From Macrostomum lignano (taxonomy: Eukaryota), in assembly GCA_002269645.1 (NCBI GenBank), contig NIVC01001385.1, positions 62,001-126,000 on the forward strand: a stretch of DNA of 64,000 bases, in the 5' to 3' direction. Below the pieces are notes generated by a model. The model saw nothing but the letters and a program-made list of their open reading frames with translations. It ran no database searches and had not been told where the DNA came from. Below are positions 13,431 to 47,030 of this stretch, piece after piece. The position numbers and the translations under genes are program-made. Each line of letters starts with the position of its first letter. The first letter of the stretch is position 1.

Positions 13431-14395
13431 CATAGTCTAGATCATATTGAGTGCATGCTGAAATGTTCTAAACCAATGCATGCCAGTGCCAACTGCCAAG
13501 TAGATACATGCCAGTGCCAAGTAGATACACACCAGTGCCAAGTAGATGCACACTAGTGCCAAGCCATAGTCTGGATCATGTTGGCTACATGCTGGAATAA
13601 AAATTGTTTGCACACCAAGGATGTAGAGTTTTTTCAAATTGCATGCCAGTGCACGCCAATGTTGCATATCAGGTAGCGCTGATAAAGGGGCAGCGTGATA
13701 AAGAATATAGCCAATTCCCTAGCTGCCAGGTATATTGCCACAATGTTGTCACAACGTTGATATCTAATGTTTCTGAATTGTTGATGTCAATGTTGCGGCA
13801 ACATATTTTTTGTCGTTGCAAATGTTGTCATATGTTGCCATATAATGTTGCCATAACATTAAAGCAATGTTGACGTAACAACATTTTGAAATCTCTTTTC
13901 TTCCTACTGATAGTAATGCAGCGAGATTATTTAATTTGTAGTAGATTGTTTTAATATTCTGAAAAAAACAAAACGAGACGCAAGACCACCCTGCAGCTTT
14001 AATCCAATTCAATGGGAAGAATGAAACAAAATGGCGCACTCGAAGTACAACAAAAAGTTGTTGGTTTTATATTTTTCTAGATGGAATTTTACTTCAAAAC
14101 AGAATAAATTGCAAATGGTTTTTACTGCGCAAAGAGATGTCAATAGGGTTTGTTGTAAATTTGTAAGTCAATGGTATGCAAATATAACTTAGATAAGGGG
14201 GAAATAATATGGCATACAAAGTCATACAAAGCGGCTTTAAGAAGGAAAATCACTTTGCAGCATCATTTTTTTATATTCACCCACAACTAGAGGCTTCAAT
14301 ACAAAAATGTCCTTTGCTATCAAACAATCAAAGAAATTCGGACAGCTAGATGTTGACAAAATAACTTGGTACATTGCAATTGATTTTACACGCCA

Positions 14396-16929
14396 TTAAT
14401 AATTGTCTTCTTCGTCAGCGTCGTCAGCACCGAAACCTTCAGCATCGCCTTCGCCGTCCAATCTAGGACCAACACCAGAATCGGCAGCATTTTGCCCACT
14501 AGAGGCGCGTTCAGCTTTGCGACGTTCTCGAACGGCGGCAAAGCGCAGATGCTCGCCCACGGCTTCCTCGATCGCGAGTCCTGTCGCCGTCTTATGGGCC
14601 GTCCATACGACATCTGAGAACGAGAGAATTCCTGAATTATAAATTAAATCAAACACAAATGGACTATTTCAACGTCTGAATTAGAAACTAATGGGCATTA
14701 CATTCTGCTTTTCTTACTTTTGATAAGGGGGAGAAGTCCAAGGTTTTCAAACGGCAGTTTGGACACACCCCTACGAACGGCACCACGAAGGCTGTACTGC
14801 TTAGCCAATCCGTCGGTCATCAGTTGGTACATAAGGGTGCTTACTTGCGTTGAAACAGACTTTCCACCCAACCGACGGAGAAAGGCGAACTGAAATGTTG
14901 ATGTTGGTTGATCACAAAATTGAAGTCGAAAGAAGTCTTGTTAGATAGCTTCTTATAAGAATCTATCAAAGCTTGCAAATCGTTTTGCTATCATTGTACG
15001 ATATTTTAAAGAATCAGAAATCTCTAGCAAAAAAAGAAATCAGTGGCTTTAATTACAGTGCACATTGCATTCTAGCTGTATCATTTTATTTAACGAATAT
15101 TTACCACAGTCTCTGTTGACTTTCGATCCTCCTTGACTTGACGGCTCCATGCTAGAAGCCCCTCCGGGGAGTTGAACGGCAAGCCACCCAAAATGGCTTT
15201 GTCAGTAGGAATTTGGTTTTGTCAACTATCAGCAGCAGAATGAGCAGCGGGCAATGGGTTTGAGGAGATATGCTGCTCAATCGATTGAAGTCGCCGATCG
15301 ATGCTGCACACTTTAAGATACGTCGCCCGCTGCGACGCTGAAATATTAGAAAAATAAAATTGTTGTTTGCTTATTATACGCATATTATATGTTTTTGCTA
15401 TATATGTATCTGAGAAATATACTTCTATACGAGACAAACCATTTTTCTCATAAAAAATCAAAGCGTAGTTGTTGTGAAAATATAAAATGAGTATAAGCTA
15501 TAGTCATGTCAGTCAATGAACAGATTCATTTTAATATTTAGTGTGGATTCATGAATTTGGATCTAATGAGTAAATAGTGAGTCTATCTGTAAGCAGCATT
15601 TACTGGTAGGGTACAAAAAATATCATAACTGTTACCTTCTATTTTGGAAATCATAGAAGCAACTTCTGCCAAAGTTACAGTTGACGATTGTCCTGGACTA
15701 GCAACATCAGGTTGTTCTCCGTACAAATCGCCGAGAGTCACCAGAAGTGACTGTGTATTTGCAGCTGCGAAAGGCGACAGTTCGACCGATGGTGAATTTC
15801 GTAAGCCCGGCGACGACACTGCAGACGGCAGAGCAGACCGGTTACGATTCGCTGGTGATGATATTGCCGCAGCGCCAGCTGATGATGGCATTGCCGCAGC
15901 GCCAGCTGATGATGACACTGCCGCAGCGCCAGCTGATGATGGCATTGCCGCAGCGCCAGCAGATGATGACACTGCCGCAGCGCCAGCTGATGATGGCATT
16001 GCCGCAGCACGAGCTGATAAAATCCCACATGGTGCGGTAATAACTGATGTAGCTGAATTGTTGCTGTTGGGCCCAGGGCGGATGTTCGAAGCATGTGATT
16101 GTTGCAGTACAGTCTGCAGCCTTGGTGCCTTGGGTACCACAGTCGGTTCACCAGCTGGTAATCTCGATCTTGATTTGCGATTCCTTGAATATTCGATCTC
16201 CTCGTCCAGACAATTACTGTGTCTATCGATGAAGACATCAGCAGGTGGACGATGCCTCGACACTTCGCAGTCCGTAGATACGACGTCACCTTTGTTTTCA
16301 TAACGACTTCTTAATTTTAAAGCTGAGCGCCATGAATCTGAGAGGTTATATAACGAGAAGCGCAATGTAATGCAAATATTTTTCCCTGGCAGGTCATAAT
16401 TGAGCACTTTAATTCATATCAGTATTATGCGATACATTTTTTAGTTGTTTATTGTACGATGTAATTTGTAATAATGTCAGTTATAAATAAACAAGTAATA
16501 AACAAAAATACAAACCAAGTGCAAAAAACCTATATTTTATACATACATAGGCATACATATATGGGCTTTGAAACTTCACAAGTCACTATTAACCATGCTT
16601 TACAGTAAAATGACAAACATATTTACTCTTGAAACTCTTTAAAAGTATATGCTAAACGGGAAACAAACCCTGAACTGAGAAAAACCAGCTTACGTACCAT
16701 GCTGTGCCAATACGATCACCTCGTGTAGAGTCCAATTTTCGTCTGGAGCGATCCGTCCATCGATTGCCTTCTCATACGCTCGTCTTGGGGGCCACAGCAC
16801 AGTCGTCGGGGACTTGAACCATGTTTTGAGTACCAAATCGAAAGAACGGTCGGCAGCGAATAAAACGAGAGCATAGGTCAGAGCAGGCATCGATGGCTCT
16901 TCTTGATCAGAGTCAGAAGATGACATCAT
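14396..16929 (-). pseudogene. ORF2 of element A (DUF4806-like), five exons, one stop and one frameshift
   Basis: Phase-compatible GT-AG exons 16929-16698, 16337-15636, 15337-15105, 14889-14718, 14613-14396; N-terminal YALVLF..W..WPP..W motif; LRRLGGKSVSTQVSTLMYQLMTDGLAKQYSLRG; AIEEAVGEHLRFA. Confidence 0.75.
15866..16010. repeat. 27-bp coding tandem repeat (SSAGAAAMP/SSAGAAAVS), alternating units
   Basis: gccgcagcgccagctgatgatg(g/a)ca(t/c)t, about 5-6 copies. Confidence 0.9.
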
Positions 16930-16968
16930 GAAACTGAATTTAAATCGGAACGCTTGAACAGGCAAATT

Positions 16969-19157
16969 TCAAAAGGTGTGCAAAATAGGAAGTGCTACTA
17001 AGCTGCCTTCGCGCTGCTTCAAAAGCATCCCTTTGCACAATAAATCGGCAGATGGGATGAAGCTCAAATCACAAGAGAGATCGCTAACAACTACTATATT
17101 TATATCTAACGAATTGACAGCGCTGTCATAAAATGGTTCCATACGGCGATACTGTAGACCAACTAGAATAAAACTATTATCAACGCATGATAAAATATGC
17201 TTCACGCAAACAACAGCACCTTGCTTAGTAAAAACATAGCAATCCGGATGTAAATTGGAAATGAATGTGTGTCGATCAGGCAGAATTACTTTTGAAAAGG
17301 CTCCGGAGATAGATAAATGATGGACAGTAATGTTAGGAATCGGTCTAATTCCAGAAAAAGACACATTCTGAGTTCCAGAAAACTTATCAAAATAGCCTAG
17401 GGTAACATCTCTTTCTAGAACTCGCTTGACAACTTGTTGCAGGGTGAATGATGGGCCTCTACAAAACTTAGTAAAAAAGCGTATAAAGTTTTCACCCCAA
17501 AAGCAGCTAAAATTTTCGAGACAACCGAACAGTCGCACGTCATTCGGCACATGGATTAGGGCGTGAATCGAAAATACAATGAACTCTGGGCCCCATGCTT
17601 TTGTGCACTCAGAAACAAACCACTTGATGAGGTCCTCTGAGAAATCGCAATAATGCGAACATAAAACGGGATGCGACATAAGAAATGTGAATGTGTGCAA
17701 TGAGAGAATTAACTGGTACATAACAGAACTAACAATTCCCTTCAGAGCAACAGGTGCAAGATATAAGATAAACATGCGCAATTCTGTTGCCTTCCAGAGT
17801 TTTAAAACATTAAGGGATCGCGGCCGACGAGGAAAATCGTGCGTTATACATGATCTCAGAGACGTTAATGTTGTGCTGATTTGCCGTATAGAAAGCGAAG
17901 GGACGCGGTAGTCAACATGTGCGGCAGATAAGGACTTTAAAATTCTGAAAACAGCGCCCTCATAAATCAGGTGCATGGGATCTAATGGAAAGCACTTGAT
18001 CATGTCTATTGCTAAGGACAAAAACGGACTTTGTTGGCGATTGCGAATGTGGTCTATATAGGCTTCAGGCGTGCGGAACATATCATCAGTGCGAAGAGGT
18101 GCAGAAACATCGACAAAACAGACCCTACGTGCAACATACTCGCCTTCGACTACGCATTTGTCACATGAAAAGTAGCCTGTGCAATGTTTGGTACTTTTAA
18201 CATAGGATCGAGCAGGTGTGTCGCACATTACCATCCTCAAAATAAAGGGAACACATTTTCCATTTGGCATTATGAATCCAGCTGAGATTAAACTGTGCAG
18301 CTCAGCTATGCAATCAGCCAGAAAGTCATTAACAAAGGCAGGCTTCGAATCGCCACAATAGATGCCGATGATAAAAGAACAGTCACAAAGGTCCCTTAGG
18401 CGTCCAAAAATTGGCCAAATGGTACATGTTGTGCTCCGATAGACCTGCGCACCATCAATAAAAAGATGAAAAAAAACGGTACTCATCAGCAACAAAGATA
18501 GACAATTAGCCAGTACAAAATTTAAAGCAGCTTTGACACCAAAATGGTAATAGTGGCCAGGTTCAACAGTTTTTACAGATACTTTGCGTTCAGTTTTCAT
18601 CAGAGTACGATAGTCACGTGGCAGGCCAGGCTCAATGGCTTCCAAGCGATGAAGTAAATCATTAACCATTGCAGTGTCTGGATCTTTTGCTTTGACCCAA
18701 TTACAGAGAGCAGTTTGTAGTTGCTCCCTACGGTCAATCAAGTTAAGCTCAGACTCCATAGCCGAAAATTCAGAGCCTCGATCAGATAGATTAGCACTAC
18801 TTTGAAAGCTTGCATTACTTGAACCTGAAAAGTGTGACAATTTTTAGGGAGTCAAAATATATTTCATCTATAGTAGAGCAAAAAATGGATAAACAGTTAA
18901 CCACAAATTAACTTACCAAAATGGTTTAGAGCCTGTACCACTTCAAACTCTTTAGATCCTATATCTGCTTCCATTTCAACTTCTTGTTGGTTGCTAGACA
19001 GAGATACACAGGAATCTTGAGCTTCTAGTACTTGGTCAACTGACAGTCCTATATTAGGATATTCAGAAGCAGATGCAGAACTTCTCTGGTCTTGGACCAT
19101 ATAGTACTCAGATAGTGCTTGCCTCTGAATAGTACGTTTGCTCATTTGCTTCTCCAT
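16969..19157 (-). CDS. CMC/EnSpm DDE transposase, two exons (19157-18917, 18824-16969), apparently intact, about 700 aa
   Basis: Uninterrupted 623-codon frame with FIDGAQ, CDTPARS..GYFSCDKC, LDPMHLIYEG, WKATELRMF, HALIH and FWGENF; the GT-AG intron 18916-18825 joins the upstream exon in frame. Confidence 0.88.
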
Positions 19158-21929
19158 GATTTTGTAAAGATCTGAAAAGTTTTTGATTTATTGAATATTA
19201 ATGTGAAAACTGAAGAATATAGCCCATATGACAATGACTATATCACAAAGGATATATACATTGCTTATACATAAGTAGTTATATCTAAACTTTACTTAAT
19301 GGTATGATACATTTGTAAATAAGATGCATTCTTAGTAGATGCATTTCTTAGTCTTTTCCTCACTTTTTTCTCTAACCTTTATATACATAACACTGGCCTG
19401 TTCACACGCGCTTCTTTGAATAAACTTTTTCTTGACCATATTATGGAGCTGAGATCTGCAGCTTTCATTTGAATCAAGTTACAATTGAAACAGACTGAAA
19501 TTATATCTGCTAGAAGACATTGTAGCAAGGGTTTCAGAACTTTTGATGGACAATATATATTAGCTTTTTTCCATTGACCTTATCCCTTAGCCCTAGGGCA
19601 GCACAGTCCAGATTGGCCCAGATTGTTCTTTGCTAATAGAACTGATACTCAGGGCCATAGCAACCCACAACTAATAAATTAAAGTACATGAACTAACTGA
19701 TTGAGTACACATGCAGCCAGCTAACATGACCACCCAATAGGCTTCCCCCCCTAGTTATGAAAATAATTTTTTTCCAAAACAGTAAAAAGGCCTAATTAGT
19801 ATATAATAAATTAAGCAATTATATAAATATTAGGTTTAAGCTAAAATAGCCAATATAGAAAAAAATCAAAGGGCATTCAAGAAAATATTTTGAAATCAAC
19901 ATAATTAAAATACCTAAATACTCGTAAATAGGGATATAATAAAATTATATTTGAAAAACTATATACTATTTAAATATTTTAATTATTCTTGATAACTTAT
20001 AAGCCCCATGGCTATGTCTATAGTCAGTAGGTGTAGCTAGGAATTTCCTACAGGGGATATACCAAGGAGAATTTTTTATGGAAGGTATACCAAGGTAAAA
20101 GTATTATGATAGAGTTACATGGTAGCATATATAGCAACAAAAGGCAACAAAAAATATTAGTTAGGCTCTTTAGGGAAGGATACATCCCCCTATCCTCCCT
20201 CCCTATACCTTTGCCTATAGTAAAATATAGATGAAAAAACTAAAAATAATGGCTCAATACTACAATAAGTTGAGTCCAGTTGGAATTATTCATTTAAACC
20301 TAGGCTTCAAGTGTAGGCCTAATTTTTTTAATTATATATAAACTTAGATTTAGCACATGCTAGCATACAAAGTTTTATAGTTCAAGCTAGGTTAGGCCTA
20401 CCATCTAGGCTACTAAGTTCTAATTTTAGGCCTAGCCTATCCAATTTTTAATACCAACTTAAATAAAAATAAAAATGGCCTACCTACATTACATACTATA
20501 ATTTTTTATAAATTAAATGCCTAAAATACTTAAATAAAGCTTAGAACACATCCAAAACTATCTACTAGGGCAGCAAGGTCTGAAAATAAATGACGCCTAG
20601 CTATGCCTTTGTCTGGTTGTCTAGCTAAGTTAAGATTAAGAAAGACTGGGACTATAGAACTGTTTAAAAAACAATGAGGTAACTAGTGACTTGAATATTG
20701 AAAAATGTCATAAGTAGTGTTAGACTCTACAATAACCAAATATTAGCCTGTTCTAACAAGAACTATCTAACAAGGGCTACAAGCAAGCTCAAGAATTTTA
20801 TCCATGCAAATTTTATCCATGTATTGTTTACATCTTTTAAGTTTTATAAACGATAAATTGTATTGAGCAATACACTTCTTCTAACATTAACAAAAGAAAA
20901 TACTTATTAAGGCCTAAAAAACGACAAAAAAAATTTGTACTTAAATATAAATTTTCTGTGCCTTGGCTACTTTCAAAGAAACAGCCTTTTACCAGCTAAA
21001 TGGTTTTATTATTTTCTAATTTTTGAGCAAGGTCATGTGCCCTTATGTTCTACTATAAGCAGCCTCAATAGTAAAATACCACTACAAAATAAAATGTTGT
21101 CACGGCAACATTGTTACAATGTAGCTGAAACATAAAATGTCACGGCAATATCTATGCAACACTGTCAATATTGGTACAACATAAACTGGCAGTAAGGGTT
21201 GTCGACTACTTTGCTGACAATGTATTGCGCAGCTCTTGGTTTAGAAAAAAATGGCGTCTGATGCCCTCGGATGCCGGCGTCACTGTTGCCAGAATAATAG
21301 GTTTTGGCAGCCTCGTCTAAAAATTTCTTGCAGGCCTGGCTGCCTATAGAGGGGATCATCCACTTCAGCTTGGAGCAAAGCTGAAGGGTACTATTGGCTT
21401 GTCCCCTGCTGCTGCTGCAATCGCATCGTCAAATAAAAGGACTTGACAATGGCTTCTGAAAAAAGTAAGTTGTCACTTAATGTTTGTTTGGTTTGCCATG
21501 TTTAATGGTTAAACTATGGTTTGGGATTTTAGAAGCAATAAAATAAATACCAGAGCTACCGCAATGAAGTGCAAAGTCCAGCAGCGCACAGGCCTTCTTC
21601 CCAGCCCGCTGAAAAACAAGCGGATTCACATAAAACCAGGTAGATCTTGGTTGTGACTTTTGACACTATGTAACACTTGTTTACAGTGCCAGTTTTGACA
21701 CTTCTTCGACAATACTTTTGTCCAGCCTGTGACACTTCATTTTGACACTGGAAATAGAAAAGGAAGAAATGCGAGTGTTACGAGACACTCAATGACAGTT
21801 GTCAAATGACAGTAAAGCGATGGCCTCTGAAGACACTGGTAACACTAAAATATGACACTAGTACTTACACTCAACTGTGACAGTAGATTGACAGTCCCTA
21901 GACAGTGGTAAGTGACACTGAAGGACACT

Positions 21930-22400
21930 CAGTTTTACACTGCTTTGACACTGCCTTGACACTCCTCCGACACTACCTGACACTACCTGGACACTCCTCC
22001 GACACTGCCCTGACACTACCCGACACTACCTGGATGCTCCTCCAACACTGCCTGACACTGCCCGGACACTCCTCCAACACTGCCTGACACTACCCAACAT
22101 TACCTGGACACTCCTCTGACACTGTCCTGACACTACTTGGACACTCCTCTGACACTGTCCTGACACTGCCCTGACACTACCCGACACTACCTGGACACTC
22201 CTCCGACACTGCCCTGACACTGCCCTGACACTACTTAGACATTCCTCCGACACTGCTTGACACTACCCGACACTACCTGGACATTCCTCCGACACTGTCC
22301 TGACACTGCCCTGACACTACCTGGACACTCCTCCAACACTGCCCTGACACTACCTGGACACTCCTCCGACACTACCCTGACACTGCCCTGACATAGCTCT
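21930..22400. repeat. CTGACACT-based subterminal array of element B (left)
   Basis: Dense ctgacact(g/a)c repeats; inverted counterpart at 30790-31270. Confidence 0.92.
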
Positions 22401-23052
22401 GATACTGGCCGAGTGTGATCTGACAGTTTTTGGACACTGCTCTCGATATAGAATATAGGAAATGAATACCAGTGAACACTGCAGGAGAAGAGTTTGATCC
22501 AAAAGAAGTTGTAAAGTTGTATTAGATATCAGAGATCAAGAGCGCCAATCAGAAAAAATCAAGCTTATCAGCCAATATGTCAGAGAACACCAAGCGGATC
22601 CACCAAACAGAGAACACCAAGCTTATCAGCTTGTTTTGACAATTCTTGCCAGAGAATTTCAGTTTTTCTAATTAGAACAAAAATAGGAAAATAGTTGTAC
22701 ACTGTTTAAATTCCTAAGCAGCAAATGGCAAGCAACGATTGGGAAAATTGGAATGCCTGAACTGGACATGCAAAAGAATTGGCAATATCCACCAAACAGA
22801 GAACACTAAGCTTATCAGCTTGTTTTGAAAATTCTTGCACAGAGAATTTTATTTTCCTAATTAGAATAAAAATAGGAAAATAGAAAATTGTAATGCCCGA
22901 ACTGGACATGAAAAAGAATTGGCGATATAAACATGTGAAGTAGCCCCTCCATAGAGGTGTGGGCATTAAAAAAACACCTTTCAGTTTGGACTAATGAAGA
23001 AATTACTAGTGACTAATTAAAATGCAAATTCATTGTTTTAAATAGTAAATTA

Positions 23053-25012
23053 TTAGACATGTTCATCGGTGGGCTGTTTGATCGGGTGGGCATCATCACC
23101 AATCTCGCTAATCTCGCTCCCGACGGTGGCGGTGCTGGAGCCACTCGCAGCATTCGCAGGCTGCACAATCAGGCAGGCATTGTCACCAATCTTGCTAATC
23201 TCGCTCCCAACAGTGGCGGTGCTGGAGCCGCTCGCAGCATTGGCGGGCTGCACAATCAGGCGGGCATTATCACCAATTTCGCTAATCTTGCTCCTGACAG
23301 TGGCGTTGCCGGAGCCGCTCGCAGCATTGGCGGGCTGCACGATCGGGCAGGCATTGTCACCAATCTCGCTAATCTCGCTCCCAACAGTGGCAGTGCCGGA
23401 GCCGCTCGCAGCATTGGCGGGCTGCACAATCGGGTGGGCATCGTCACCAATCTCGCTAATCTCGCTCTCGACGGTGGCAGTGCCAGAGCCGCTCGCAGCA
23501 TTGGCAGGCTATACAATCGGGCGGGCATTGTCACCAATCTCGCTAATCTCACTCCCAACTGTGGTGGTGCCGGAGCCGCTCGCAGCATTGGCAGGCTGCA
23601 CAATCGGGTGGGCATTGTCACCAATCTTGCTCCCAATGGTGGCAGTACCGAAGCCACTTGCAGCATTGGCGACATTGGACTTCACATTGCTGCCCTTCCC
23701 ACTATCCAGCTGCTTGCAAGCTGCGGTGGCCATGTGCCAAAATACCTGCGGCAACTGCTTGGCGCAAATGGACTGCAGGCCCAATGAATTTATATATTCC
23801 TCAATAGTAGCCTGCTTGGTCGCATCCGCTGCGGGCCTATTCGTGCCGTTTTTTATAACCCGGCCTGTGAAACTGCATGTCCCAAGTTCTTCGGTGGAAT
23901 ATACAGCACAAAGCAGGCTCCGAAGAGCCTTGTCAAGAACCGCCACATCCACCTCCTTTCCCTTTTTAGTTAGGTAGTTGCGGAATTCCTGTTTGATAAC
24001 AGATAACGCAGTCGCCGAAACTTGAACGCTTGCCATCAGATGAGCGCACTCCTCATCAGCATGCGGTCCAACATCGGCCTTGGTGCCAGCTTCCTTAGCC
24101 ACCGCGCCGTCTGATGGGTTGCTGGGCTTCAGCGGGTCCGACGTACTGTTCAGCACTACAAGGTCTATTGCGATGTCTTCGTATTGCTGCGGCTCTGTCC
24201 CCGCGTTAATAGCTCCTGAGTTGCAGGGATCGACTGGGTTGTTAACATTCACAGATTTTAACCCGGCCAACACGTTGCCGCTGTCCTTGCAAGTGCGCAG
24301 TCCAGCGCTCACTGCGGTCGCCACGTCTGCGAATGCATCCTGCAGTACGCGATGTTCCGCCTTAAGTATGCCTAAGTGGGTGCTGTACGTGCGGAGCACT
24401 GACTCTGCAGCCTTCTGGTCGGCTTCATTAGCAGACTGTTGTTTGGCTAGTGTAGCCTTTATTTTCTCCAGTTCATTTTTACTTTCTTCTAGCTCAGCTT
24501 TGTAGCTGGCAGCTATTGCCTGCTGTGACTTCGCTCTTCATCTGCAAGCTGCAGTACGCGCTCCAATTTGGAACGCAGGGTCGCCGCTTCCTGCTGCAGG
24601 GTGGCGCAGCGAGTGCAGGTATTCGCCACTCGAATGATTGGCTCTGCTGGCGCGCTGACGCAGCACTTAATGGCTCTCTCACCCTCCTTTTTTTCGGTAT
24701 ACGGCCCCTTGAACAGTGTGCCTTCGCCTTAGCCGCATTTTTTGCGACGCGCACGAGAACATGGGCACCTAGTACGAGCAGCTCGCTCTCGGGAAGCGTG
24801 TCCGGATCCGTTTCCGCCGCAGCAGATTCGGGTTTAACACTTAGCTGCGCGCGATTCACGAGGCTGACCTCTTTTTTGCCTGTCGCCCAGCGGACGACCC
24901 ACCACTCGTCCAAATCCTGTTGGGGAACCGTCGTCCGTCGAGTGGTCGACGAGCAATTTTTCTCTGCAGCTTTTCTCTTTGTGGTGGCATTCGATTTCTT
25001 GGAGGGCGCCAT
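23053..25012 (-). pseudogene. BEN-domain-like accessory protein with coiled coil and 87-bp C-terminal repeats
   Basis: MAPSKK start; CTRC plus coiled coil; ALRSLLCAVYSTEELGTCSFTGRVIKNGTNRPAADATKQATIEEYI resembles a BEN fold; frameshift and stops near 24490-24720; 29-aa repeats at 23053-23680. Confidence 0.7.
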
Positions 25013-25336
25013 TTTTTCTCTGCAAATGGAAGGGAAACGTTGCTTCTGAAACGACAGACTGCTCCGAACATAATGCTGAATTTTTTTTAAATAATGAACT
25101 GATGTAACAATGAACAACACTTTCGAAACGATACGAAACGACACGACATTTGTTTTAATGAAAAAGGCACTTTCCGTACTTCGTTTACTCACATAATAGT
25201 AGGCTTAATGAACATTAAGTATAAGATAAACTACCATAGACGACCATTCCCCACTTCGAAAGAGCCCAAAAAAACGACAATTATTGTTGTAGTCAGATTT
25301 TAAATAACGGCGATTGTACGACTCCTTCACTATGTA

Positions 25337-26229
25337 CACTCACCAACATTTAAAACGCAACACTCTAACTAGAAGAAAAATCAACTCACTCAGAAGAGTC
25401 AAAGCGCATAGTCTATGGTTCAAATCGAGCTTCTGAAACGCGTGTAGCCTCCTCTCGCAAGTAACAGGGCGTTGACTCGACGTGGCATTCCCAGAACAAG
25501 GCGTCGAAAAAAGTCCTGGGGAATTTCCTGCCACGCGTTAGCAACAGCGTTTCGCAGTTCAGCGACTGTCTGCGGCGGATTCTGCCGTTGAACACTCCGC
25601 TTGATAAAGTCCCAGACATGTTCAATTGGGTTCATATCAGGGGATCTTGAAGGCCACCGAAGAGTACGCAGGTGCAGCTGGTCCTTGAGTTCGCTGACAG
25701 CTGCTGCCCGGTGCGCCGGTGCATTATCGTCCTGCAGTATGCAGTTTGCGACGCCATCAAAGTGGTTGTTAACAAAAGGGAGCAGATGCGTCTGCAGCAA
25801 ACGAGCGTACTCATCGCCGTTCACGTTTGCGTCTAAGAAAACCAGCTGGGTCCTGCCTCGCATTGAAATCCCTGCCCACACGTGTACGGAGGGTCCCTGC
25901 CCATCGCAGCTTTGCACGTGCTGCTGCAGAAGCTCTTGCCATGGCTCACGCCAGACGCGAATTCGACCATCACTGCGAAAAAGACGAAACCGACTCTCGT
26001 CTGTAAAGATAACGCGCTGCCACTGTCTGTTGAACCATTCTGTTGAACCATTCTCTCAGCTGGATCACTCTATCTGAAAACAGTCCATAGTCATCGCCCT
26101 GTTACTTGCGAGAGGAAGCTACACGCGTTTCTGAAGCTCGATTTGAACCATAGACTATGCGCTTTGACTCTTCTGAGTGAGTTGATTTTTTTTCTAGTTA
26201 GAGTGTTGCGTTTTAAATGTTGCTGAGTG
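25337..26229 (-). mobile_element. Internally deleted Tc1 (DD34E) element with 135-bp TIRs and TA TSD, nested in element B
   Basis: TIRs 25337-25471 and 26095-26229, nearly identical; TA flanks; VIFTDESRF, VWAGI and QDDNAPAH..WPSRSPDMNPIEHVW (34 residues between D and E). Confidence 0.93.
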
Positions 26230-26302
26230 TATACTCCTTCACTAGTGTCTAATTTCACAGACGGAGGCTCTAACGAATGAGACAAACAGAAGCCCCTTAG
26301 AA

Positions 26303-29182
26303 TTAGGAGAATTGGGTGTGTGGCATAAAGGCAATGTGAGTTTCGCTGACGCAGCATGCACCAAGAACACAAGGCGCAGAAACTTCGTTGACGTCACCGG
26401 CAATGTCGTCAAAAGGGTTGACGGACAGTCTGCGAACGTGACTGTATACACAACCTTTGTGAAATTCGTTGGCTGACAGCAGGAAGTAAGGGTGATCGAC
26501 GTCGGTTCTTTCCTCAACAGGTAGTCGAACAACGGAGAGGATGACGTCATCCGTCAGGGCCTCGTGGCGTATGGATTGAAGGCGCGCAAAGATGAAGTCG
26601 CGTCTGCTGTCACCGTTCCAGAGCACTAGGAAGCACGACACAGTTTTCTTCAGTTGCAGTCTGGGGTGCCAGATTTCAAGCTGTAAACCTGTTGGCAGCA
26701 CCAGACTGTTAAAACGCCCATTCTGTCGTCTGCCACCTCTGTATAGGTGGATTCCGGAGACGGTGGTATGCGACGGGTTGTCTCGAACGACAAACGGAGA
26801 TGTCACACCCAGCTGTGATTGGACACGCCTGCAGTTCAGTCGTCTGTTCGTGATTTCAGACAACTTGGCGGAAATTCGTTTCGAACCGTGAATACGGCGA
26901 CGAAGTGTCAGGTGATGCGATTCGTAGATGCTGGCTGACAAGCGGAATATAGGACCGAATAGCACCGCCATGCTGGGAAAATGTTCGCACACTTGATGCG
27001 CATTGTACGACATAAAACTGGTGGAGTATAGAATGCTGAGCAAACGATAAAAGTAACGTAGTGTTCCGGCGGCGCGCAGAACTTGCACTTAAGACGCTCC
27101 GTCCATGCAAAGCCAAAAGATAGACATGGACAGAAGCAGGAAGTGGTTGTAGTAGTCTGCGGGTAGGAATTGCTCGAGAATCATTGGACCGTAGACGAGC
27201 AGAAATGCTTCCGCCTCGTGACCCCTCATGTGCCCGACCTCGCGGAGAGATCGCCGGCACCGCTGCATGGATGCTGGCACGTGAATGCGAGACTGCGCTG
27301 CGTCAATGACAGCTACACGTCTGCTTAAATCGGGGTTGTTTGCGTTTCTGTCGCCCTTCTTCGCTGGTGGCATGAATAGCTGTTGCATCAGCGATCGGAC
27401 TAGCCCACAATTTAGCTGGTGGAGATAGCAAGGTGGGCAGTCCTGCATGTAATCGAATCCGATTATTTGCGACAACGGGGAGACCCCATGATGCCCAAGC
27501 GATTATTGCCCCAGTAGGTATGGACTGTGTGAGCATCAGAGTATCGGCGAGAGTGCGTACAGTTCGCTCCGTACAGCCTGCTTCCTGTGCCGCTAGAAGG
27601 GCTTGTGCGGAAACGGCACATGGAAAGATCCGCGCGTTTCCAGGGCGATTGACGTCGTGCTCAGTCAGTGTAGCATGTTCCACAGCCGTGTATTGCGTTA
27701 AATCGCTTGATAAACATGGCGTCTGCTCGCTGCGGGGCATCCAAAATGAACAGCAAAGTGTGCAGCCGGACACATCCCGCTTCGTCGCCGTTCACGCCGC
27801 CACCACAGGTGTGATGGATGCCATCAGTCCGAAGAGCATTTAGCTCCTGCACGAGCCATGGCATGAAGGCTTGGCAATGCAGCTTCCTCTTGGAAGCCCA
27901 AAAGCCACAGAGAACTACGTAGCGACTTTTCTTCGCGTCATGTACTTCGTTAATTGTCAAGTACACTGGGGAGCAATCGTGAACACTATGACGGAATGCT
28001 GGGAACGCATCCAGATTCGCGCTTACGGACAAGTCGCGCCGAAGCTGCAATCGATGGACCTCTTAAACGCAGTATAGCGGATTGAAGAGCCCATGTGCAA
28101 GTATTCCGTGCTGGATGGCTGATCAGCGGGGAAAACAACATTCTGCAATAGGTGGTCGCGCTCTATGAATTGTCGGATCTGACCCTGTATGTCCAGGCGC
28201 CAGAATTGTACTACGGAATCCTCGGCCTGCAGATCAGCTCCGCATTCACAAACGTCACAACAACCTCGGGTCCACCTGGCAATTGTTCACGACAGCAGGA
28301 GATGCAATAACGTATGCTAGTGTGCCGGAAGCCACCGGCGGCATTAATAACGTTGCCAAGTACCTTGGCTAATGTAGGGCAGGCCGAGCCTTCAGGCAAG
28401 ATTTCAATTGAGTAACGCAGCAAGTCGTCTGTGCCAATATTCGTTGACGCGTGCTTGTCTGTGTACATTTGCGCTAACGTTGCTATGGAACCGTACGTGT
28501 GCTTCGACCCTGGGAAAACGGGATCGTTTAAACGGGCCAGATTAGGATCGCCGCCGTCTCCACCACCGTCGCCTCCGCCGCCTCCACCACCGTCGCCTCC
28601 GCCGCCTCCACCACCGTCGCCTCCGCCGCCTCCACCACCGTCGCCTCCGCCGCCTCCACCACCGTTGCCTCCGCCGCCTCCACCACCGTCGCCTCCGCCA
28701 CCGCCTCCACCATCGTCGCTGTCGACGCTGCCCGAACCGTCACCGGCGTCGGAACTGTCGCCGCTGCCCGAACTGTCACCGGCGTCGGAACTGTCGCCGC
28801 TGCCCGAACTGTCACCGGCGTCGGAACTGTCGCCGCTGCCCGAACTGTCACCGGCGTCAGAACTGTCGTCGCTGCCCGAACTGTCACCGGCGTCGGAACT
28901 GTCGCCGCTGCCCGAACTGTCACCGGCGTCGGAACTGTCGCCGCTGGCCGGCCGGTCGTAGTCTCTGGAAGCCCTGGCGGTGCCCTTAGATGCATCGCCT
29001 TCGAAGACGCTGAATTCGCCTTCGTGGGCCGTACTGGCGTCCTGGCCGTCGACTCTCGAGCTCCTTGCACTAACGCCGCTGGGTTGCGTTCGCTTCGCCA
29101 TATGTCTGGCAAGCTTTTTTGCGTGCGAGTTTATGCAGCGTCTGAATCGGCGACGCGCCCTATCGTCTTCGTCAGATTGCAT
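26303..29182 (-). pseudogene. CMC/EnSpm transposase of element B, frameshifted
   Basis: NLDAFPAF, LDAPQRADAMFIKRFNAIHGCGTC, YLHQLNCG, SYNAHQVCEHF, SASIYESHH; N-terminal in-frame 21-bp (Gly-rich) and 36-bp (SSDAGDSSGSGD) repeats at 28530-28950. Confidence 0.85.
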
Positions 29183-29785
29183 GTATTTCGTGTTAAAAGT
29201 GTGTAAACAAAAAGATTTTATATTTACAAAAAGCTAGGTGGGTCCACCCCTTAATATTTTAGCAGCGAAAATTGAAAGAAATGTACATTGACATTCATTC
29301 ATTATGCGTACATCAAGACTATTTACACCACACAGGTGCCAACGTAGTTATATTTCAGTTACTGTTTTTAACAGACGCACGTGCACGTACATGAAACTGG
29401 AACAGGTGCATGATCGAAAAACTACAAAGGAAAAAGACACTGCAGCTACGGCTACATGCGCTAGACAGCGAATCCCGACGAATCTCGGCAACATAATAAA
29501 ACTGGAGCAGCTTACGATGCACACAGCCGGACAAAGAGGAGAACTGGCAAAGAAAGCCCAACCCCATAGCAACGCCGACGTTGCTGTCCAACGCAGCTAC
29601 ACACATACCGATATTAGTATGCATAAAGCAAAGCGCCATTAATTAAATAAAAAAAAGAAAAAAATTGTTCAAAATTAAATCCCACACTGGGATGAGAGTC
29701 TGAATCTTAGAGAAAAGGGAGAAAAGGGGTGAGATCCTATTTCAGCATTTCAGGAATTGAAATTCGAACTGATCGAAACTGAGAT

Positions 29786-30619
29786 TTACTCAGGCTTGGA
29801 AGCCTTCGCCTTCTCGCAACGTAAATCTCGCAACGGCCGCTTGCGGCGTCGTAGAGGCCGCATGGCTTCTATTGGTGCCTCCGGTTGCGTTGGTGGCATT
29901 TCGATAGCCCAGAACTGGCGGTCAACGGGTTTCTGCACCGGTTGGTTACTCCGATGCCTGTCCGCCAGTAACAGACGCCTCCTGCGACTCTCTGGTGACA
30001 GCTCAGCGAACCAGGGCGCACATTCCGGACAACAATGCGCCTCCAGCTCCTGTCTATCGGCTTTGCGCCTACAGACATATACACTGGCTGGGCCGACATT
30101 CCGTTCAGGAAGTCGGTTGTAGTCAGCGCGGATTTCTGACGCCGACATGCCAGCGTACATGCCTCCAATGCCAATGCAAGCTGGCCGGCCCTGTGTCTCG
30201 GACCCGTCGTCATCGATCTCAGTTGGCCCCTGTGTCTCGGACCCGTCGTCATCGATCTCAGTTGGCCCCTGTGTCTCGGACCCGTCGTCATCGATCTCAG
30301 TTGGCCCCTGTGTCTCGGACCCGTCGTCATCGATCTCAGTTGGCCCTGTGTCTCGGACCCGTCGTCATCGATCACAGCTAGCCCATGAGTTGTCTCCCCT
30401 GTATACCTGATACGGCCATGCTGCGTTCATGGTTTGCGTAGGTGGCAGTTCGTCGCAAGCGACGATTGCACGGTGATGCAACACATGTACACCGGTATTA
30501 AAAACAGGCGATGCAGGGCGAGAGCTGCAAAGACGACGGACCTCGTCACGCAGGATTCTATTCTCTTCAACTAACGTATCACAGATGCTGCAGTTAGATG
30601 CATCGGACCAGTGGTCCAT
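29786..30619 (-). CDS. Miniature CtIP/Sae2-like protein (about 277 aa if two compensating 1-nt homopolymer indels are corrected)
   Basis: C-terminus VCRRKADRQELEAHCCPECAPWFAELSPESRRRRLLLADRHRSNQPVQKPVDRQFWAIEMPPTQ matches the recalled CtIP/RBBP8 C-terminal domain ([52 protein letters not shown]); N-terminal CSICDTLVEENRILRDEV. ORFs 30619-30365 and 30160-29786 are in the same frame. Confidence 0.8.
30189..30372. repeat. 39-bp tandem repeat, about 4.7 copies, encoding EIDDDGSETQGPT
   Basis: ccctgtgtctcggacccgtcgtcatcgatctcagttggc x4 plus a partial unit lacking one C at 30344-30346. Confidence 0.95.
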
Positions 30620-30789
30620 TGGATGCTGGAAGGATGGCAGTGAGTGTCTGTCAGTGTCAGCCCTTACGGGGACCGTATGGGGATTATAATTATAAGAAAG
30701 AGTGCAATCACAAGGCTAGAAATACAAGAAAGAAGCGGACACAAAAACACGGATCAGATTTCCATTTATTTACTGTCTCTCAAATGTCT

Positions 30790-31415
30790 CTTGTCAGAGC
30801 AGTGCCGGTCAGTGTCAGAGCAGTGTCAGAGCAGTGTCTGTCAGTGTCAGGAGAGTGTCAGAGGAGTGTCACAGCAGTGTCAGAGCAGTGTCACAGCACT
30901 GTCGGTCAGTGTCAGAGCAGTGTCGGTCAGTGTCAGGGAAGTGTCAGAGCAGTGTCACAGCAGTGTCAGAACAGTGTCAGAGCAGTGTCGGTCAGTGTCA
31001 GCCCTGTCAGGGAAGTGTCAGAGCAGTGTCGGTCAGTGTCAGAGCAGTGTCGGTCAGTGTCAGGGAAGTGTCAGAGCAGTGTCAGAGCAGTGTCAGAGCA
31101 GTGTCGGTCAGTGTCAGCCGTGTCAGGGAAGTGTCAGAGCAGTGTCGGTCAGTTGTCAGAGCAGTGGTCTGTCAGTGTCTGTCAGTGCCTGTCAGTGTCA
31201 GAGTAGTGTCGGTCAGTGCCTGTCAGTGTCAGAGCAGTGTCAGAGCAGTGGTCTGTCAGTGTCACGTAGCATTGTCGGCAGGTAGTTTCGACTGTTGCAC
31301 ACTCGGTGGCAGTGTCACGTAGCACTGTCGGCAGGTAGTGTCGACTGTTGCACACTCGGTGGCAGTGTCACGTAGCACTGTCGGCAGGTAGTGTCGACTG
31401 TTGCACACTCGGTTA
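30790..31415. repeat. AGTGTCAG subterminal array plus three 53-bp units (31261-31415), right end of element B
   Basis: Direct reading. Confidence 0.9.
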
Positions 31416-33408
31416 CAGTGCTACTGAGTGTAAATCAGTGTTAATTTTCAAGTAGCCTGACACTTCAACTGTCAAGGAGTGTCAAAAATGGCCCTACCAG
31501 GATCCGCCGGGAAAAGAACGGTAGATAGCAGCTTCATCTACAGTAACGAGGAGATCATCAGCATCGTGCGTCTTCACAATGAGCTGCAGTGCGAGGTTGC
31601 CTGATTGCTGAGAAGCTCTTGCTAACGAGATGATCTCTCCCTTGACATCAGGCTTTAGCCAACCCTGCCAACCCTCGCCATTTAAAATCGTCTTGTGAAT
31701 GGCGCTCACGTAGGACAATACGTAAACACGTGACAGTCGCTTGTTCAGTTCTTGCAGATGGTTGAACTGTGATGCCATGTCTACAAGCTTAATGGATGCA
31801 ATTGAAGAAGTCAGCTCTTCAACTTTCACCTGGAGCTCGTGCAGATCGGCTGTCAGCATGGTGATGATGTTGGTAGCATCAAGAATCGAGCAGTCCTCGT
31901 GGGCTTCGCTCAGACAGCGCTCGATACGGGACACAAGGCTCTGGTGCAGCGCGCGGGCCAGCTGGCACATGTCCGCTTCGATGTCCTGTTCAGTACGATA
32001 GTGAATTTACAAGTGAAGTTTAGATTACAGACCATCGATTTGATCTGACAGAGACATGAATAGTTTTTAAGTCGAGTGAATACAAATAAAAGCTATATGG
32101 AATTTTAGCAAAGGCTACTACGGTATTCAAACCTTCTGTTCACGAAGCTGCCAGTTGACTTCACCACTAGGGCGACGTCGACCGTCCCGTTTCTCCCAAG
32201 CCTTGCAATCTGGTGCAGTCACGACGAGCCAACCCTCCAGGAGCTTCACGCTGTCATACTCGCCACCGGGTTGAATTGACTTGGCGCACTTTTCGTAGCG
32301 AGGATAGTCCGATCTGTGATTTATTTTGTAGTTTCGAAATTAAAATTTTACCTACCTTTAATTACTTGAGATAGGGCACAAACTTAATTACCGACCCAGA
32401 CTCACCTGCGAAAGCACTCACTGCGGACACAAAGAAAGTCGGCGACAGACTTCCACAGCATGGCCACCTTCCAATGTGGTAGCTGGCTGTCCTGGACGAC
32501 CATCATAAGCTCTCTGACAGGCGCCAGCAGGTCCAGCAGGCAAAGCATGTCTGCCACAAAGTTGCTGCCAAACAGTTCATATTGCGAGGTTTCGTTGACC
32601 CCGCAATTCATATTTATAATGTTTATTTATTATTTATTATTTATTATTTATTATATTATTTATCATATTTATTCACATATATTTAATCTCTTTTTAAATG
32701 CAATGTACAATTGCTCGCTAAACCATCGCCATCCACGCCATGCAATCCACGCCATGCACGCCTTGCATGCCAAAGTGTACGCCAACCCCTTAAAATATAT
32801 ACCAATGCACGCCATGCATGCCAACTGAAAGCAAATGCACGCCAGCTGAAAGCAAATGCACGCCGGAAAATTCAGGCGTGCACTACATGATGCGGACTAT
32901 GGGTGCCAAGTAGATACATACCAGTGCCAAGTAAATGCACACCAGTGCCAAGTAGATATACACCAGTGCCAAGTAGATGCACACCAGTGCCAAGTAGATG
33001 CACGCTAGTGCCAAGCAAATGCATGCCAAACTAATATATTACAGAAAAAACACAACTTTTTGTTTAAAAATGCCTTTCAAAAAAACAAAACTTAAAAATT
33101 TTGTAGCATGCAAATACTGTATATAAGATTTCTTTTTGGCACATTAAAATTTACTTGTCATTTTGCAATAAAAATAAGTATGAATTCTTGTCTCAACAAA
33201 ACATGCCCTACTATCATGCCAGGCCATATTTTATATCAGCTATTCCATGCCATAGCATGCCAATATGCCACTTTTAGTATGCAATACCTAAATACATGCC
33301 AATGCATGTCATAATTTTTAGGCCAAATTAAATGCGTGCTTAGAATATTGGTGCTTCATATTGGTGAAGAAATTTCAAAAATAAGACTTAAATATGATCT
33401 TGACAATG

Positions 33409-36400
33409 CTTAGAGCTTTAGCCACATATCCTGGCTCTTCTGGGTTTTGGAATGGAATGGAATTGCTTTGACCCAGCGGGAGTACAAGTCCACGATATTT
33501 AGTAAATACCGCAGCTGGGGTACGGCTGTTTCGATTGGGTCCGGCACCGGAAGCGGTCCGAATAAATTCATGTGAAACGCTGTGCAGGTGCATGCATGTG
33601 GTGCAGTGGTTGGCAAACATGACAACCGATTTTCGCTGATTGACATTGTGTGCATTCTGCTGTCCAGCGCCATATGTCTGACTTCATGCATGGCCAGAAA
33701 AAATGATGGGCGACTAAACGCAGCATGGCCTTCACGCCTGGATAGGCGATGTAGTGCAGTGCTTGTACAATCTGACGGCGCACGTGCTCTGGTATAAACG
33801 GTTGCAGGTTTGGTTGCGAAGTTTCGCAGTACATCGGACAATCTGATAACCTGACGTCGAATGGGCGGTAACGGTCACCGCTCGTGAGCCCCGCTTCTCG
33901 CTGTGCTGTGCCTTGGCAATCGCAGAGAGATCTGCGGGCAACTGCAATGTGTGCACGTCTTCCGATTAGACAGTGTTCACTGTGTGCTTCCCAGGTTTGA
34001 CGATGTCACGAGTTAAGGTATCAGTGACCATGTTCTTGGCTCCCGGGATATGAATTATGTTGATCACATATTCTGAGATGGTGGCCAACTGGCGCTGCTG
34101 CCGATCAGATAGGCGCTGCTTATTGCTATTGAATGCACCGACTAACGGCTTGTGGTTGCTAAACACGGCTGTGGGCTGGCTGTGAATGATGTGTCGCCAG
34201 GTCTTGATGGCCGCAAACACGCCTAGAAGTTCACGGTCGAACGCGCTATATGCCATTTCCGCTTTGGTGAGCTTCTGTGAATAGAACGCAATGGGGACTG
34301 AATCACCGTCTATATTCTGGTGTAAACTGGCGCCCAATGCGAACGAGCTGGCGTCCAATGTGATGGTGAATGAACCAGTTGGGGTCGGGTCTGTCGGGAA
34401 GGCGAGAGTCACTGCTGCCGCTAGGCTATCCAAGAGCTCTCGGAAGGCGGCATCATGTTCTGCTTGTCAATGATAATCAATTTCGGTGAGCAATCGCAGC
34501 GGTTGCACAATGCTTGCGTATTTCGGAATGTGGCGCTGGTAGAAACCAAACATGCCGAGAACGCGCTGAAGGCTTTTGAACTCTGCTGGAGATGACAGCT
34601 GTCGCAGCGCTTCCACGCGGGATGGTAGTGGCTGGACTCCGTCTCGATGCTAAAAAACCGTCTCCGTCCAAAAAACTCGATGCTACTCTGAAAAACTGGC
34701 ATTTTTTGGGTTGAACTCGGAGCCCCTCTTTGTGTAGGCGTTGCAGCACGATCTGAATGTCGTTGTGATAGTCTGCCTCTGACTTGCTGTGAATCAGTAT
34801 ATCGTCAGCGTATGTGATGACACAGGTCAAGTCTCAAAACAGCGAATCGATGAAGCGTTGAAATGTGCTGCCGGCATTGCGCAACCCGAATGGCAACCGG
34901 ACGTATTCAAAAGAGCTGAATGGCATGCAGATTGCTATTTTCGAAATATCCTCCTCGGTATGAAATGGTAGGCCTTGACCAAGTCCAATTTTTGCTAAAC
35001 ACGCTGCTGCTACGAAGTTGGTGGTAAAAATGCCGGATATGCAGAAGTGCGTACCTATTGGCCACCGTCATGCTGTTCAGAGCGCAGTAGTCCCCACAGG
35101 GTCTCCACAATCCGTTGGCCTTCTTGACCATATGGAGTGGTGATGCCCAAGGGCTGCAGGACGGGCGAACAATGTCCATCTGTACGAGCTTGTTAAATTC
35201 TGCCTTGGCCACCTCGTACTTTGCAGGCGAGAGGGCGCGGCTTGCAGTAGACTGGTTCGCCTGACGTGATGATGCGATGCTGCACCGGAGTTGCTGGCAG
35301 GATTGAGTGATCCGCAGCTTCGATCAGCCCGGGATATTTGTCAAAAATTGCACTACCGTCGACGTCGGATACCACGTGGATTGACGGTGGTCGAAACTCT
35401 TGCTTGGCATCGAAATTGAGCGGCGCAACCAGCAAAGTCAGGGGATCTCGAAGGCACTTGGCTCCCATGTCGATGGAAAGTCCATAATGAACCAAAAAAT
35501 CCAATCCAAGAATGGGGGCTGTGTCTGCGACAATGAAGTTGAATTGAAAGGTGCAGCGTAAACCTTTTAACGAAAACAAAGCATTGCAATGCCCGTGGGT
35601 GCGAACTTTGTGCCCACTGCCCCGCGAAGCTGAACGTTACAGTGGGTGATGAGGTTGAACGGGACAAAACACGGAGGCAATAAGAATTTTTCTGCCCCAG
35701 TGTCAACGAGGAATGAAACAAACAAACTTAGTATTTGAGCGCAAACGATAGGTGTGCAGGCCTGTACGTTGTCATGGCCTGGCCGCTGTACATGACTTAC
35801 GTACTTGTTTGGGGTCGGCAAAGCCATGCGAGACAAGGCGGGTGTCGGCTGACCTTGGCGGAGTATGTTCGATGGCTTTGGACCTGGCCACTTGCACCAG
35901 GGTCGGCAAGTTCGAAGCTCTGTCAACATAGTAGATGTGCACATTGCAGACGAGTGGTTGCTGCCGTCGGCGAGGCTGGGCGTCGTAAGCTGGAGGGTCA
36001 GGTCGCCGGGAGAAATGCCAGGCCAGTTGCTGCTCTGCATTAGCAGCAGTGGACAACTGATTGATGTCGGCGAATGGTGAGGGTCGACTGGCAACTGCAA
36101 GCATGCTGTCCGCAATCTTGGCAAAATCCTCCAGCGGGCTTGTGCTCATGTCCGACGAGTGCGGAGCGAATGTGGGGCAGCAACACAGAGATAAGGCGTT
36201 ACTTGACTATGGCGTCGTCAACTTTCAGGCTGACCTCGGTAAATTGGCGTTTTATTTCATTGACAAATTGGCTTGGTCTCCGATGGCCAAGTTCCACGGC
36301 AGAAAGGGCTTCCTCGATTAGCTGATGCCGATTAGCGCGCAGTCTATCGCCCACCGCCTTCTTTAACGCATCGTAGTCGTTGCCGTTGAGGTTGAGTTTG

Positions 36401-42299: not shown

Positions 42300-42640
42300 C
42301 CTTTCTAATTCTTTTTTATTTTCTTGAATGCACGTGGCCTAATCAGGTCAGCTGTGTACTCGTAGCCACCAGCACAGCTGCAGCTATTGCGCGGCGCATC
42401 TTAACGCTGCGTACAGCATTTCAGTCCATGGACTGGGGGAGAGGCCCCACTCATCCTCAATTATCTAGCTAATGCTGGTACTCATATTACAGCTGGCCTG
42501 GGTGAAATGAAGCAATTCAGCACTCAGGACATCAGTCAAATGTTCAGAGCTAAATAGATACAAATTGCACCAACGGACTCTGGAATCAAACACCGGACCT
42601 AAATTCGTGAGTCCGACACTCTAACCACTAGGCTACAAGC
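42300..42640 (-). mobile_element. tRNA-derived SINE
   Basis: A box TAGCCTAGTGG, B box GTTTGATTCC, central CACCCAG..GTAATATGAGTACC motif, A-rich tail. Confidence 0.65.

Positions 42641-45559: not shown

Positions 45560-47030
<1,471 letters not shown>

Follow-up and report, generated by a model that had tools for sequence, protein, structure and literature searches.

A CtIP/Sae2 C-terminal domain inside a decayed CACTA transposon of the flatworm Macrostomum lignano

A 64-kb stretch of the genome of the flatworm Macrostomum lignano (contig NIVC01001385.1, positions 62,001 to 126,000; the whole stretch of 64,000 nucleotides is hereafter called the window, and coordinates are counted from its first letter) contains at 21080-32333 one old, dead CACTA (CMC-type) DNA transposon of 11.25 kb, here called element B. 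Within this element lies a short gene, referred to as the cargo, whose predicted product ends in a module of the CtIP/RBBP8-Sae2-Ctp1-COM1 family, whose members assist MRE11-RAD50 in the resection of DNA ends in the host. Judged by sequence comparison, the last 124 residues of the cargo are a genuine CtIP/Sae2/Ctp1 C-terminal domain, and the same alignments indicate that its coding sequence was acquired from the host CtIP gene. As our leading explanation, which we hold tentatively, we propose that the element acquired the C-terminal module of the host CtIP, that the module was kept by selection, and that its product was probably a cofactor of MRE11-RAD50 or a mimic of one. No prior report of a transposon-borne CtIP/Sae2 piece was found in searches of the literature on CtIP/Sae2, transposons and Macrostomum, in agreement with a preliminary description of this DNA, whose author knew of no such cargo in CMC elements.

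The C-terminal assignment, which the preliminary description had made from the CxxC and RHR motifs, held up in profile and pairwise searches. A phmmer search with the 124-aa open reading frame (ORF) against 1.84 billion representative proteins returned 29 matches at E <= 1e-3, the best of which was the CtIP of M. lignano (57% identity over 107 residues, E = 6.8e-21), with bona fide CtIPs matched at E values of 1e-7 to 1e-4 and proteins containing both CtIP_N and SAE2 at 4e-6. When the 10 best matches were themselves scanned, eight passed the SAE2 Pfam cut-off at their C-termini, and two had CtIP_N as well. An independent hidden Markov model (HMM) was built from 29 CtIP C-terminal domains that include neither the cargo nor its three closest relatives; when it was run on all 354 window ORFs, the 124-aa ORF scored 73.1 bits (E = 4.4e-22) and the runner-up reached E = 1.2. 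Each of the CPEC, RHR, FW and PPTQ motifs, and the RRRKRP basic tail, is found at its expected place in the family alignment; the invariant residues R, R, L, C, C, R and H are all kept, and of the 26 alignment columns in which at least 70% of 31 CtIPs agree the cargo retains 17, as many as the M. lignano host CtIP (17/26). The preliminary description had staked the assignment on a match to the SAE2 family or to its fold: the phmmer and independent HMM scores supply the family match, and structure prediction remained weak, the AlphaFold2 model of the domain (from a seven-sequence alignment) being of low confidence (pLDDT 63.8, pTM 0.28) and too weak for a fold search. A sequence search of the PDB found no solved structure that spans the CtIP C-terminal domain.

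The closest sequence found for the cargo is that of M. lignano CtIP (P0001/P0030; PAA54340.1 / PAA88737.1), the separate host gene for which the preliminary description had recommended a search. It is present at two homeologous loci, each flanked by the genes for acetyl-CoA synthetase (ACAS) and EMP24, and this shared synteny identifies P0001 and P0030 as the host CtIP. It spans about 3.3 kb in three exons, and its product has a coiled coil at the N-terminus and a long middle part of low complexity. Identity between the two C-terminal domains is about 52% over 108 aligned positions; over a longer stretch, cargo residues 109-275 align to host residues 308-481 at 41% identity over 184 aa (E = 7e-30), and all of the significant homology falls inside the last of the three host exons. 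The earlier idea that the element had captured and compacted a host repair gene can be kept for the source, the nearest sequence being the syntenic host CtIP; capture of the whole gene would go beyond this last-exon homology. Cargo and host protein share a clade signature made up of RHRxNQ, IEMPPT, YN(K/R)LPE and a DD(E/D)GSET segment, of which RHRxNQ is common to the cargo, M. lignano CtIP and two relatives described below (P0002 and L001) and absent from the other aligned CtIPs. Neighbour-joining groups the cargo with L001 and the M. lignano gene at a bootstrap of just 23-30%, and we therefore claim no branching order. At the nucleotide level, the only link found between the window and the two host CtIP loci is a repeat of about 270 nt (42370-42638), 69-74% identical to four sites there; these sites match one another at 83-96%.

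The boundaries of the element are given by a pair of terminal inverted repeats (TIRs) and by inverted subterminal motif arrays (Table 1). The TIR motif has five matches in the window at up to two mismatches, against 0.88 expected, and only the two TIRs have 0 or 1 mismatch; no GACACT cluster was found in the 64 kb outside the two subterminal arrays, and inverted repeats reach 92 nt. Read along the minus strand, the element comprises a TIR, the 158-aa ORF (31970-31497), a motif array, the CtIP-like gene (30619-29786), an AT-rich spacer of about 600 bp, the transposase (from 29182), a nested Tc1/mariner remnant, two further ORFs, an 87-nt repeat, the left array and the other TIR. The cargo thus occupies the 5' part of the element, next to the inner edge of the right array; the transposase, oriented likewise, begins about 600 bp downstream of it, and the placement given in the preliminary description (inside the TIRs, co-oriented with the transposase and just upstream of it) is borne out. 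A shorter boundary, defined by a 27-nt inverted match (21685-21711 / 31495-31470), was rejected: it has neither CACTA nor a duplication, and its motif recurs further out on the left. The joined flanks of the element match nothing in the window or in the M. lignano CtIP loci that could be an empty-site paralogue.

Table 1. Features of element B and its cargo, in window coordinates
Feature	Position	Strand	Description
Left TIR CACTACAAAATAAA	21080-21093	+	Canonical CACTA terminus
Left subterminal GACACT array	21650-22425		44 copies, + orientation; within 21.5-22.5 kb
Two ORFs downstream of the transposase	23509-25192	-	232 aa and 296 aa, co-oriented
Nested Tc1/mariner remnant	25335-26231		143-nt TIRs 97% alike; 165-aa DDE_3 ORF, E = 2.6e-15
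Decayed transposase	26300-29182	-	Catalytic pieces in three frames; at least 2 in-frame stops; two frame changes
124-aa ORF	29786-30160	-	Own ATG and TAA stop (ORF proper 29789-30160); entire CtIP/Sae2 C-terminal domain with CPEC, RHR, FW, PPTQ and RRRKRP tail
39-nt tandem repeat	30189-30384	-	5.1 copies, 96% matches; codes (E)IDDDGSETQGPT
In-frame TGA	30365-30367	-	Between the 84-aa ORF and the remainder of the cargo
84-aa ORF	30368-30619	-	Candidate N-terminus of the cargo protein; MDHWSD...CSICDTLVEENRILRDEV...SPVFNTGVHVLH...
Right subterminal AGTGTC/GACACT array	30640-31497		42 copies, inverted relative to the left array; within 30.5-31.5 kb
TATA-like stretch TATAATTATAAT	30683-30694	-	64-75 nt 5' of the ATG at 30619; predicted from sequence
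158-aa ORF	31497-31970	-	Flanked by right TIR and right array; same orientation as the cargo; borderline resemblance of residues 39-91 to the host CtIP N-terminal coiled coil
Right TIR AACTACAAAATAAA	32320-32333	-	13/14 identical to the left TIR

The decay of the transposase and the loss of the target-site duplication mark the element as old and dead. The N-terminal ORF of the transposase has 24-nt and 36-nt tandem repeats (28551-28950) that code long Gly/Asp/Ser runs. None of the transposase pieces matches a Pfam family, and a word-indexed protein search with them found no homologues; two weak, colinear alignments (E = 0.005 and 0.008) link them to an intact 623-aa ORF of a second element (16969-18840), and this ORF has a faint match to DUF4218 (E = 0.13). 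We take DUF4218 to be a domain of plant CACTA transposases. The nested Tc1/mariner remnant looks far younger than the CACTA element that it sits in. Downstream, the 296-aa ORF (23509-24399, minus strand), which overlaps an 87-nt tandem repeat (23081-23631, 6.3 copies), has a sub-threshold BEN-domain match (E = 0.0096), and its product may serve the element as an accessory protein that binds DNA.

The minus-strand frame that opens with the ATG at 30619 and closes with the TAA at 29786-29788 comprises 277 codons and holds, in that single frame, every peptide string quoted in the preliminary description, though a TGA breaks it; the 277-aa "corrected" protein proposed there can be obtained only by reading through this stop. 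Cargo residues ~88-152 derive from the 39-nt tandem repeat, whose product resembles the VDDEGSET segment of host CtIP. The first and last repeat units have GGG and the middle units GGGG, and the TGA arises because the first unit, lacking 1 nt, is out of frame with the remaining units; given this offset, the single-frame continuity of the cargo may be partly accidental. Two ways of reading past the TGA were rejected. The sole nearby GT...AG pair (30406-30346, 61 nt) that would excise it as an intron disrupts the frame, and an alternative genetic code (TGA = Trp), suggested by a TGA at a conserved Trp in L001, was set aside as the main reading since the 623-aa ORF and other transposon ORFs of the window read normally.

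Upstream of the repeat, the N-terminal CxxC coiled coil described for the cargo found no statistical support. The 84-aa ORF has no match in Pfam (CtIP_N included) or in the PDB, and its hhalign probability against the CtIP_N alignment is 1.8%. Two short resemblances to M. lignano CtIP are suggestive only: DTLVEENRILR recalls DSLTAENRRLK of the host protein, a non-significant ENRxL(K/R) resemblance (E = 1.8), and SPVFNTGVHVLH aligns with SPVFNRSDHLLH at a pairwise E of 0.012, in an order that differs from that of the host protein. Elsewhere inside the TIRs, the 158-aa ORF at 31497-31970 bears a weak resemblance to the host CtIP coiled coil: of all 354 ORFs in the window, it scores best against the first 110 residues of M. 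lignano CtIP (E = 0.016-0.045). Its pairwise alignment with the host coiled coil has E = 7e-4, and its Smith-Waterman score of 56, against 28 +/- 4.7, was reached by none of 2000 plain or heptad-preserving shuffles. The vertebrate CtIP_N profile and P0002 lend no support to this coiled-coil match. The ORF may be an upstream exon of the cargo or may encode an unrelated coiled-coil protein of the element; if the match is true, the element holds both ends of CtIP in the correct order, perhaps as two exons.

Cut-and-paste transposons rely on the double-strand-break repair of their host, and whether a break is repaired by end joining or by recombination decides between a conservative jump and an added copy. 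Based on the retention of every invariant residue, and of as many conserved positions as in the host orthologue, at only about 50% identity to it, we infer that the cargo was kept by selection for some time after its acquisition. Intact copies of the element would on this reading supply a CtIP-like cofactor, or a mimic of one, for MRE11-RAD50. The cargo region CxxC...RHR...FW...PPTQ...RRRKRP would bind RAD50/MRE11 at the breaks made by the transposase; the bound MRE11-RAD50 could then clear hairpin-capped or transposase-bound ends endonucleolytically, with resection promoted; and the donor gap would be repaired from the sister chromatid, restoring the element at the donor site. The C-terminal Sae2-like region has been described to contact RAD50 and activate MRE11 (10.1101/2023.03.25.534200), and the same work cites Zdravkovic 2021 for a C-terminal peptide being sufficient. 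Binding of RAD50 and activation of MRE11 by the C-terminal CtIP/Sae2 region are also described in PMC11662671. In yeast, hairpin-capped breaks left by Ac/Ds excision yield no revertants without Mre11 or Sae2 (PMC3299998).

Several observations weigh against this proposal. The CtIP-bearing element occurs in one copy within the window, and that copy is broken: the TGA interrupts the 277-codon frame, the transposase is decayed, and the 3-bp target-site duplication is not preserved (flanks TAC versus TCG), its later mutation being conceivable in so old an element. The present copy is non-functional as an element and probably likewise as a gene. Two other related transposase loci in the window are without a CtIP-like neighbour. 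The Pfam SAE2 model (PF08573), one of the checks recommended in the preliminary description, gave the 124-aa ORF 18.3 bits (E = 0.005), just under its gathering cut-off of 19.8. The 277-aa read-through scored 14.9 bits and the undoubted M. lignano host orthologue just 13.4, so the Pfam SAE2 model is insensitive for this lineage. A CDK-type S/T-P site before FW is absent as well, the cargo having KPVDRQFW where 77-87% of CtIPs show TP; this CDK site (human T847, yeast S267) is required to activate CtIP and Sae2 (10.1101/2023.03.25.534200), and it is also missing from the M. lignano host protein. Moreover, the effect of the cargo could go either way, to activation or to competition, and if the CtIP from which it was taken was close to it, the capture could be recent and the retained motifs would need no selection.

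As for the other related transposase loci, the 623-aa ORF (16969-18840, minus strand) is uninterrupted, is a distant relative of the transposase of element B and has small ORFs next to it (18897-19157 and 16690-16965). Possibly it is part of a younger element that is still intact, and it has no CtIP-like neighbour. A third transposase-like ORF, of 383 aa (53288-54489, minus strand), has 27-29% identity to the transposase pieces of element B and no CtIP-like sequence nearby. Scanning metagenomes gave no match for either the CtIP alignment or the transposase, exact look-ups of four window ORFs (124, 84, 596 and 158 aa) found no recorded protein, and a word-indexed search with the 277-aa read-through or with a four-sequence alignment returned nothing useful except P0003, the read-through query possibly being saturated by its repeat.

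The main rival to a functional cargo is neutral capture, or transduplication, in the manner of Pack-CACTA or Pack-MULE elements: the element would have taken a piece of host CtIP, essentially its last exon, which was never used and decayed along with it. We regard this as a serious possibility, albeit a doubtful one. It would account for the confinement of significant homology to the last host exon, for an N-terminal part with no significant relation to CtIP, for the single copy observed and for the lack of the gene at the other related transposase loci of the window. The cargo has accumulated lesions at a density like that of the dead transposase (one stop per 834 nt versus at least four lesions in ~2.9 kb), and in plants there is ample documentation that CACTA elements take up pieces of host genes (PMC6379663, PMC8903248). 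However, the invariant residues and 17 of the 26 conserved columns have been kept at only about 50% identity to the nearest host gene, which is unexpected under free drift, an argument that becomes void if the source gene was much closer. The C-terminal domain is also an ORF with its own ATG and stop, positioned like the 5' transcription unit of a transposon, and Pack-type elements are usually non-autonomous, whereas the present element carries a transposase.

Another explanation, to which we give little credence, is that the cargo is what remains of a paralogous host CtIP locus invaded and rearranged by transposon sequence, with 31497-31970 as the N-terminal exon and 29786-30370 as the last exon. 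The 158-aa ORF is indeed the best of the window ORFs for the N-terminus of M. lignano CtIP, and it lies upstream of the C-terminal domain in the same orientation. Yet both ORFs are inside the CACTACAAAATAAA TIR pair, and the domain lies between the inverted motif arrays, directly upstream of the transposase; the neighbours of the host orthologue, ACAS and EMP24, are absent from the window; and neither the vertebrate CtIP_N profile nor P0002 backs the coiled-coil match.

It is similarly improbable, in our estimation, that the cargo was inhibitory. A truncated CtIP without the N-terminus responsible for tetramerisation and DNA bridging would occupy the RAD50/MRE11 site and block host CtIP, such that resection would be suppressed and excision breaks end-joined, or the host response blunted. 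All the evidence for a functional cargo applies here too; furthermore, nothing in the cargo corresponds significantly to the N-terminal oligomerisation domain, and the activating S/T-P phosphosite before FW is missing. Against this, the M. lignano host protein has no S/T-P site either and a coiled-coil ORF is present upstream within the element, and the present observations do not separate activation from inhibition. That a chance open frame merely resembles the motifs, as the SAE2 score under the gathering cut-off might suggest, is refuted by the search of 1.84 billion proteins, in which M. lignano CtIP was matched at E = 6.8e-21 and bona fide CtIPs at 1e-7 to 1e-4, together with 73 bits against the independent profile.

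Two relatives of the cargo deserve mention. P0002 is an intact, intronless mini-CtIP of 315 aa with an N-terminal coiled coil and an SAE2 score of 37.6 bits, above the cut-off; it is encoded on L004, a 1603-bp JGI metagenome contig (3300040801). There, it is flanked on both sides (1-61 and 1454-1603) by tandem arrays of 20-21-bp units that share GTCGGCGAGAGCAAC in direct orientation, and the contig terminates within these arrays. This layout resembles that of a gene embedded in transposon subterminal repeats, and L004 is possibly a second instance of a transposon-borne CtIP. Returning to a cargo kept by selection, we also considered that a macrostomid CACTA lineage encodes a miniature CtIP, composed of a coiled-coil exon and the Sae2-like module, and steers the repair of excision breaks to sister-templated recombination, with P0002/L004 as the living example and the window copy as a dead one. 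We consider this extension unlikely, albeit worth stating: if it were true, blocked ends would be opened via MRE11-RAD50, the donor copy restored and the copy number raised.

The other relative, L001, is a 910-bp Logan contig (SRR31628425) with an FHA-like exon (Pfam E = 0.0023, sub-threshold), a GT-AG intron and a CtIP C-terminal domain whose FW motif has TGA exactly in place of the conserved Trp. To our knowledge, an architecture of FHA plus CtIP C-terminal domain is not otherwise known; tblastn found no FHA-like sequence in the window.

Compared with the members of its own family, the cargo has the same C-terminal module (CxxC, RHR, FW, (P/S)TQ and basic tail), at the very C-terminus and with significant similarity. 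Unlike them, it is encoded in a DNA transposon and not at a syntenic host locus, is short (124 aa now, 277 aa by stop read-through) and stop-interrupted, and has no demonstrable CtIP_N/tetramerisation domain, no S/T-P before FW and an SAE2 score just below the cut-off. M. lignano host CtIP is encoded by a three-exon gene at the ACAS/EMP24 loci, whereas the cargo lies in a transposon with no evident intron.

The En/Spm CACTA element has two products, the transposase TnpD and the accessory DNA-binding protein TnpA. Element B shares with En/Spm the CACTA termini, the inverted subterminal motif arrays and the presence of more than one ORF in the same orientation, one of which may encode a DNA-binding protein (the sub-threshold BEN match), but its extra 5' ORF encodes a DNA-repair cofactor domain and is not TnpA-like. 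Pack-CACTA elements of plants likewise have a host-derived coding fragment between CACTA TIRs and subterminal repeats (PMC6379663, PMC8903248); the present case differs in being found in an animal (flatworm) genome, in retaining a decayed transposase and in carrying a complete functional module with all family motifs rather than a random exon piece. DNA transposons with accessory enzymes offer a further parallel, namely KolobokP with a His-Me finger nuclease and fungal transposons with TET/JBP (PMC9587614, PMC12730594). In these and in element B alike, a cut-and-paste element brings a second, non-transposase protein that acts on DNA; their accessory genes, however, are reported from many copies and lineages, whereas here there is one decayed copy, and it derives from a host repair cofactor.

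The remainder of the window has further features, other mobile elements among them. Similar 21-nt tandem repeats, TGCCAAGTAGAT[A/G]CACACCAG, lie at 13494-13563 and 32903-33023 in direct orientation, 19 kb apart, with elements A and B between them. A Gypsy-type stretch with reverse transcriptase (RT), RNase H and integrase is located at 33400-36200 (minus strand), two tandem piggyBac-like ORFs of 234 aa (DDE_Tnp_1_7) at 57676-59356 (plus strand), and a Pao/BEL peptidase ORF at 61378-62400 (minus strand). The region 46001-48000 has a very strong strand asymmetry (GC skew 0.50, AT skew 0.38). The 64-kb window yielded no clear host gene, tRNA or Rfam RNA.

Gene capture by CACTA elements is in itself a known phenomenon, and if the cargo was captured neutrally, this case would extend CACTA-type capture, documented in plants, to a flatworm genome. 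A functional cargo, in contrast, would directly exemplify how a mobile element manipulates the choice of repair pathway at its own breaks, and it would provide a naturally minimised CtIP module for studying the activation of MRE11-RAD50.

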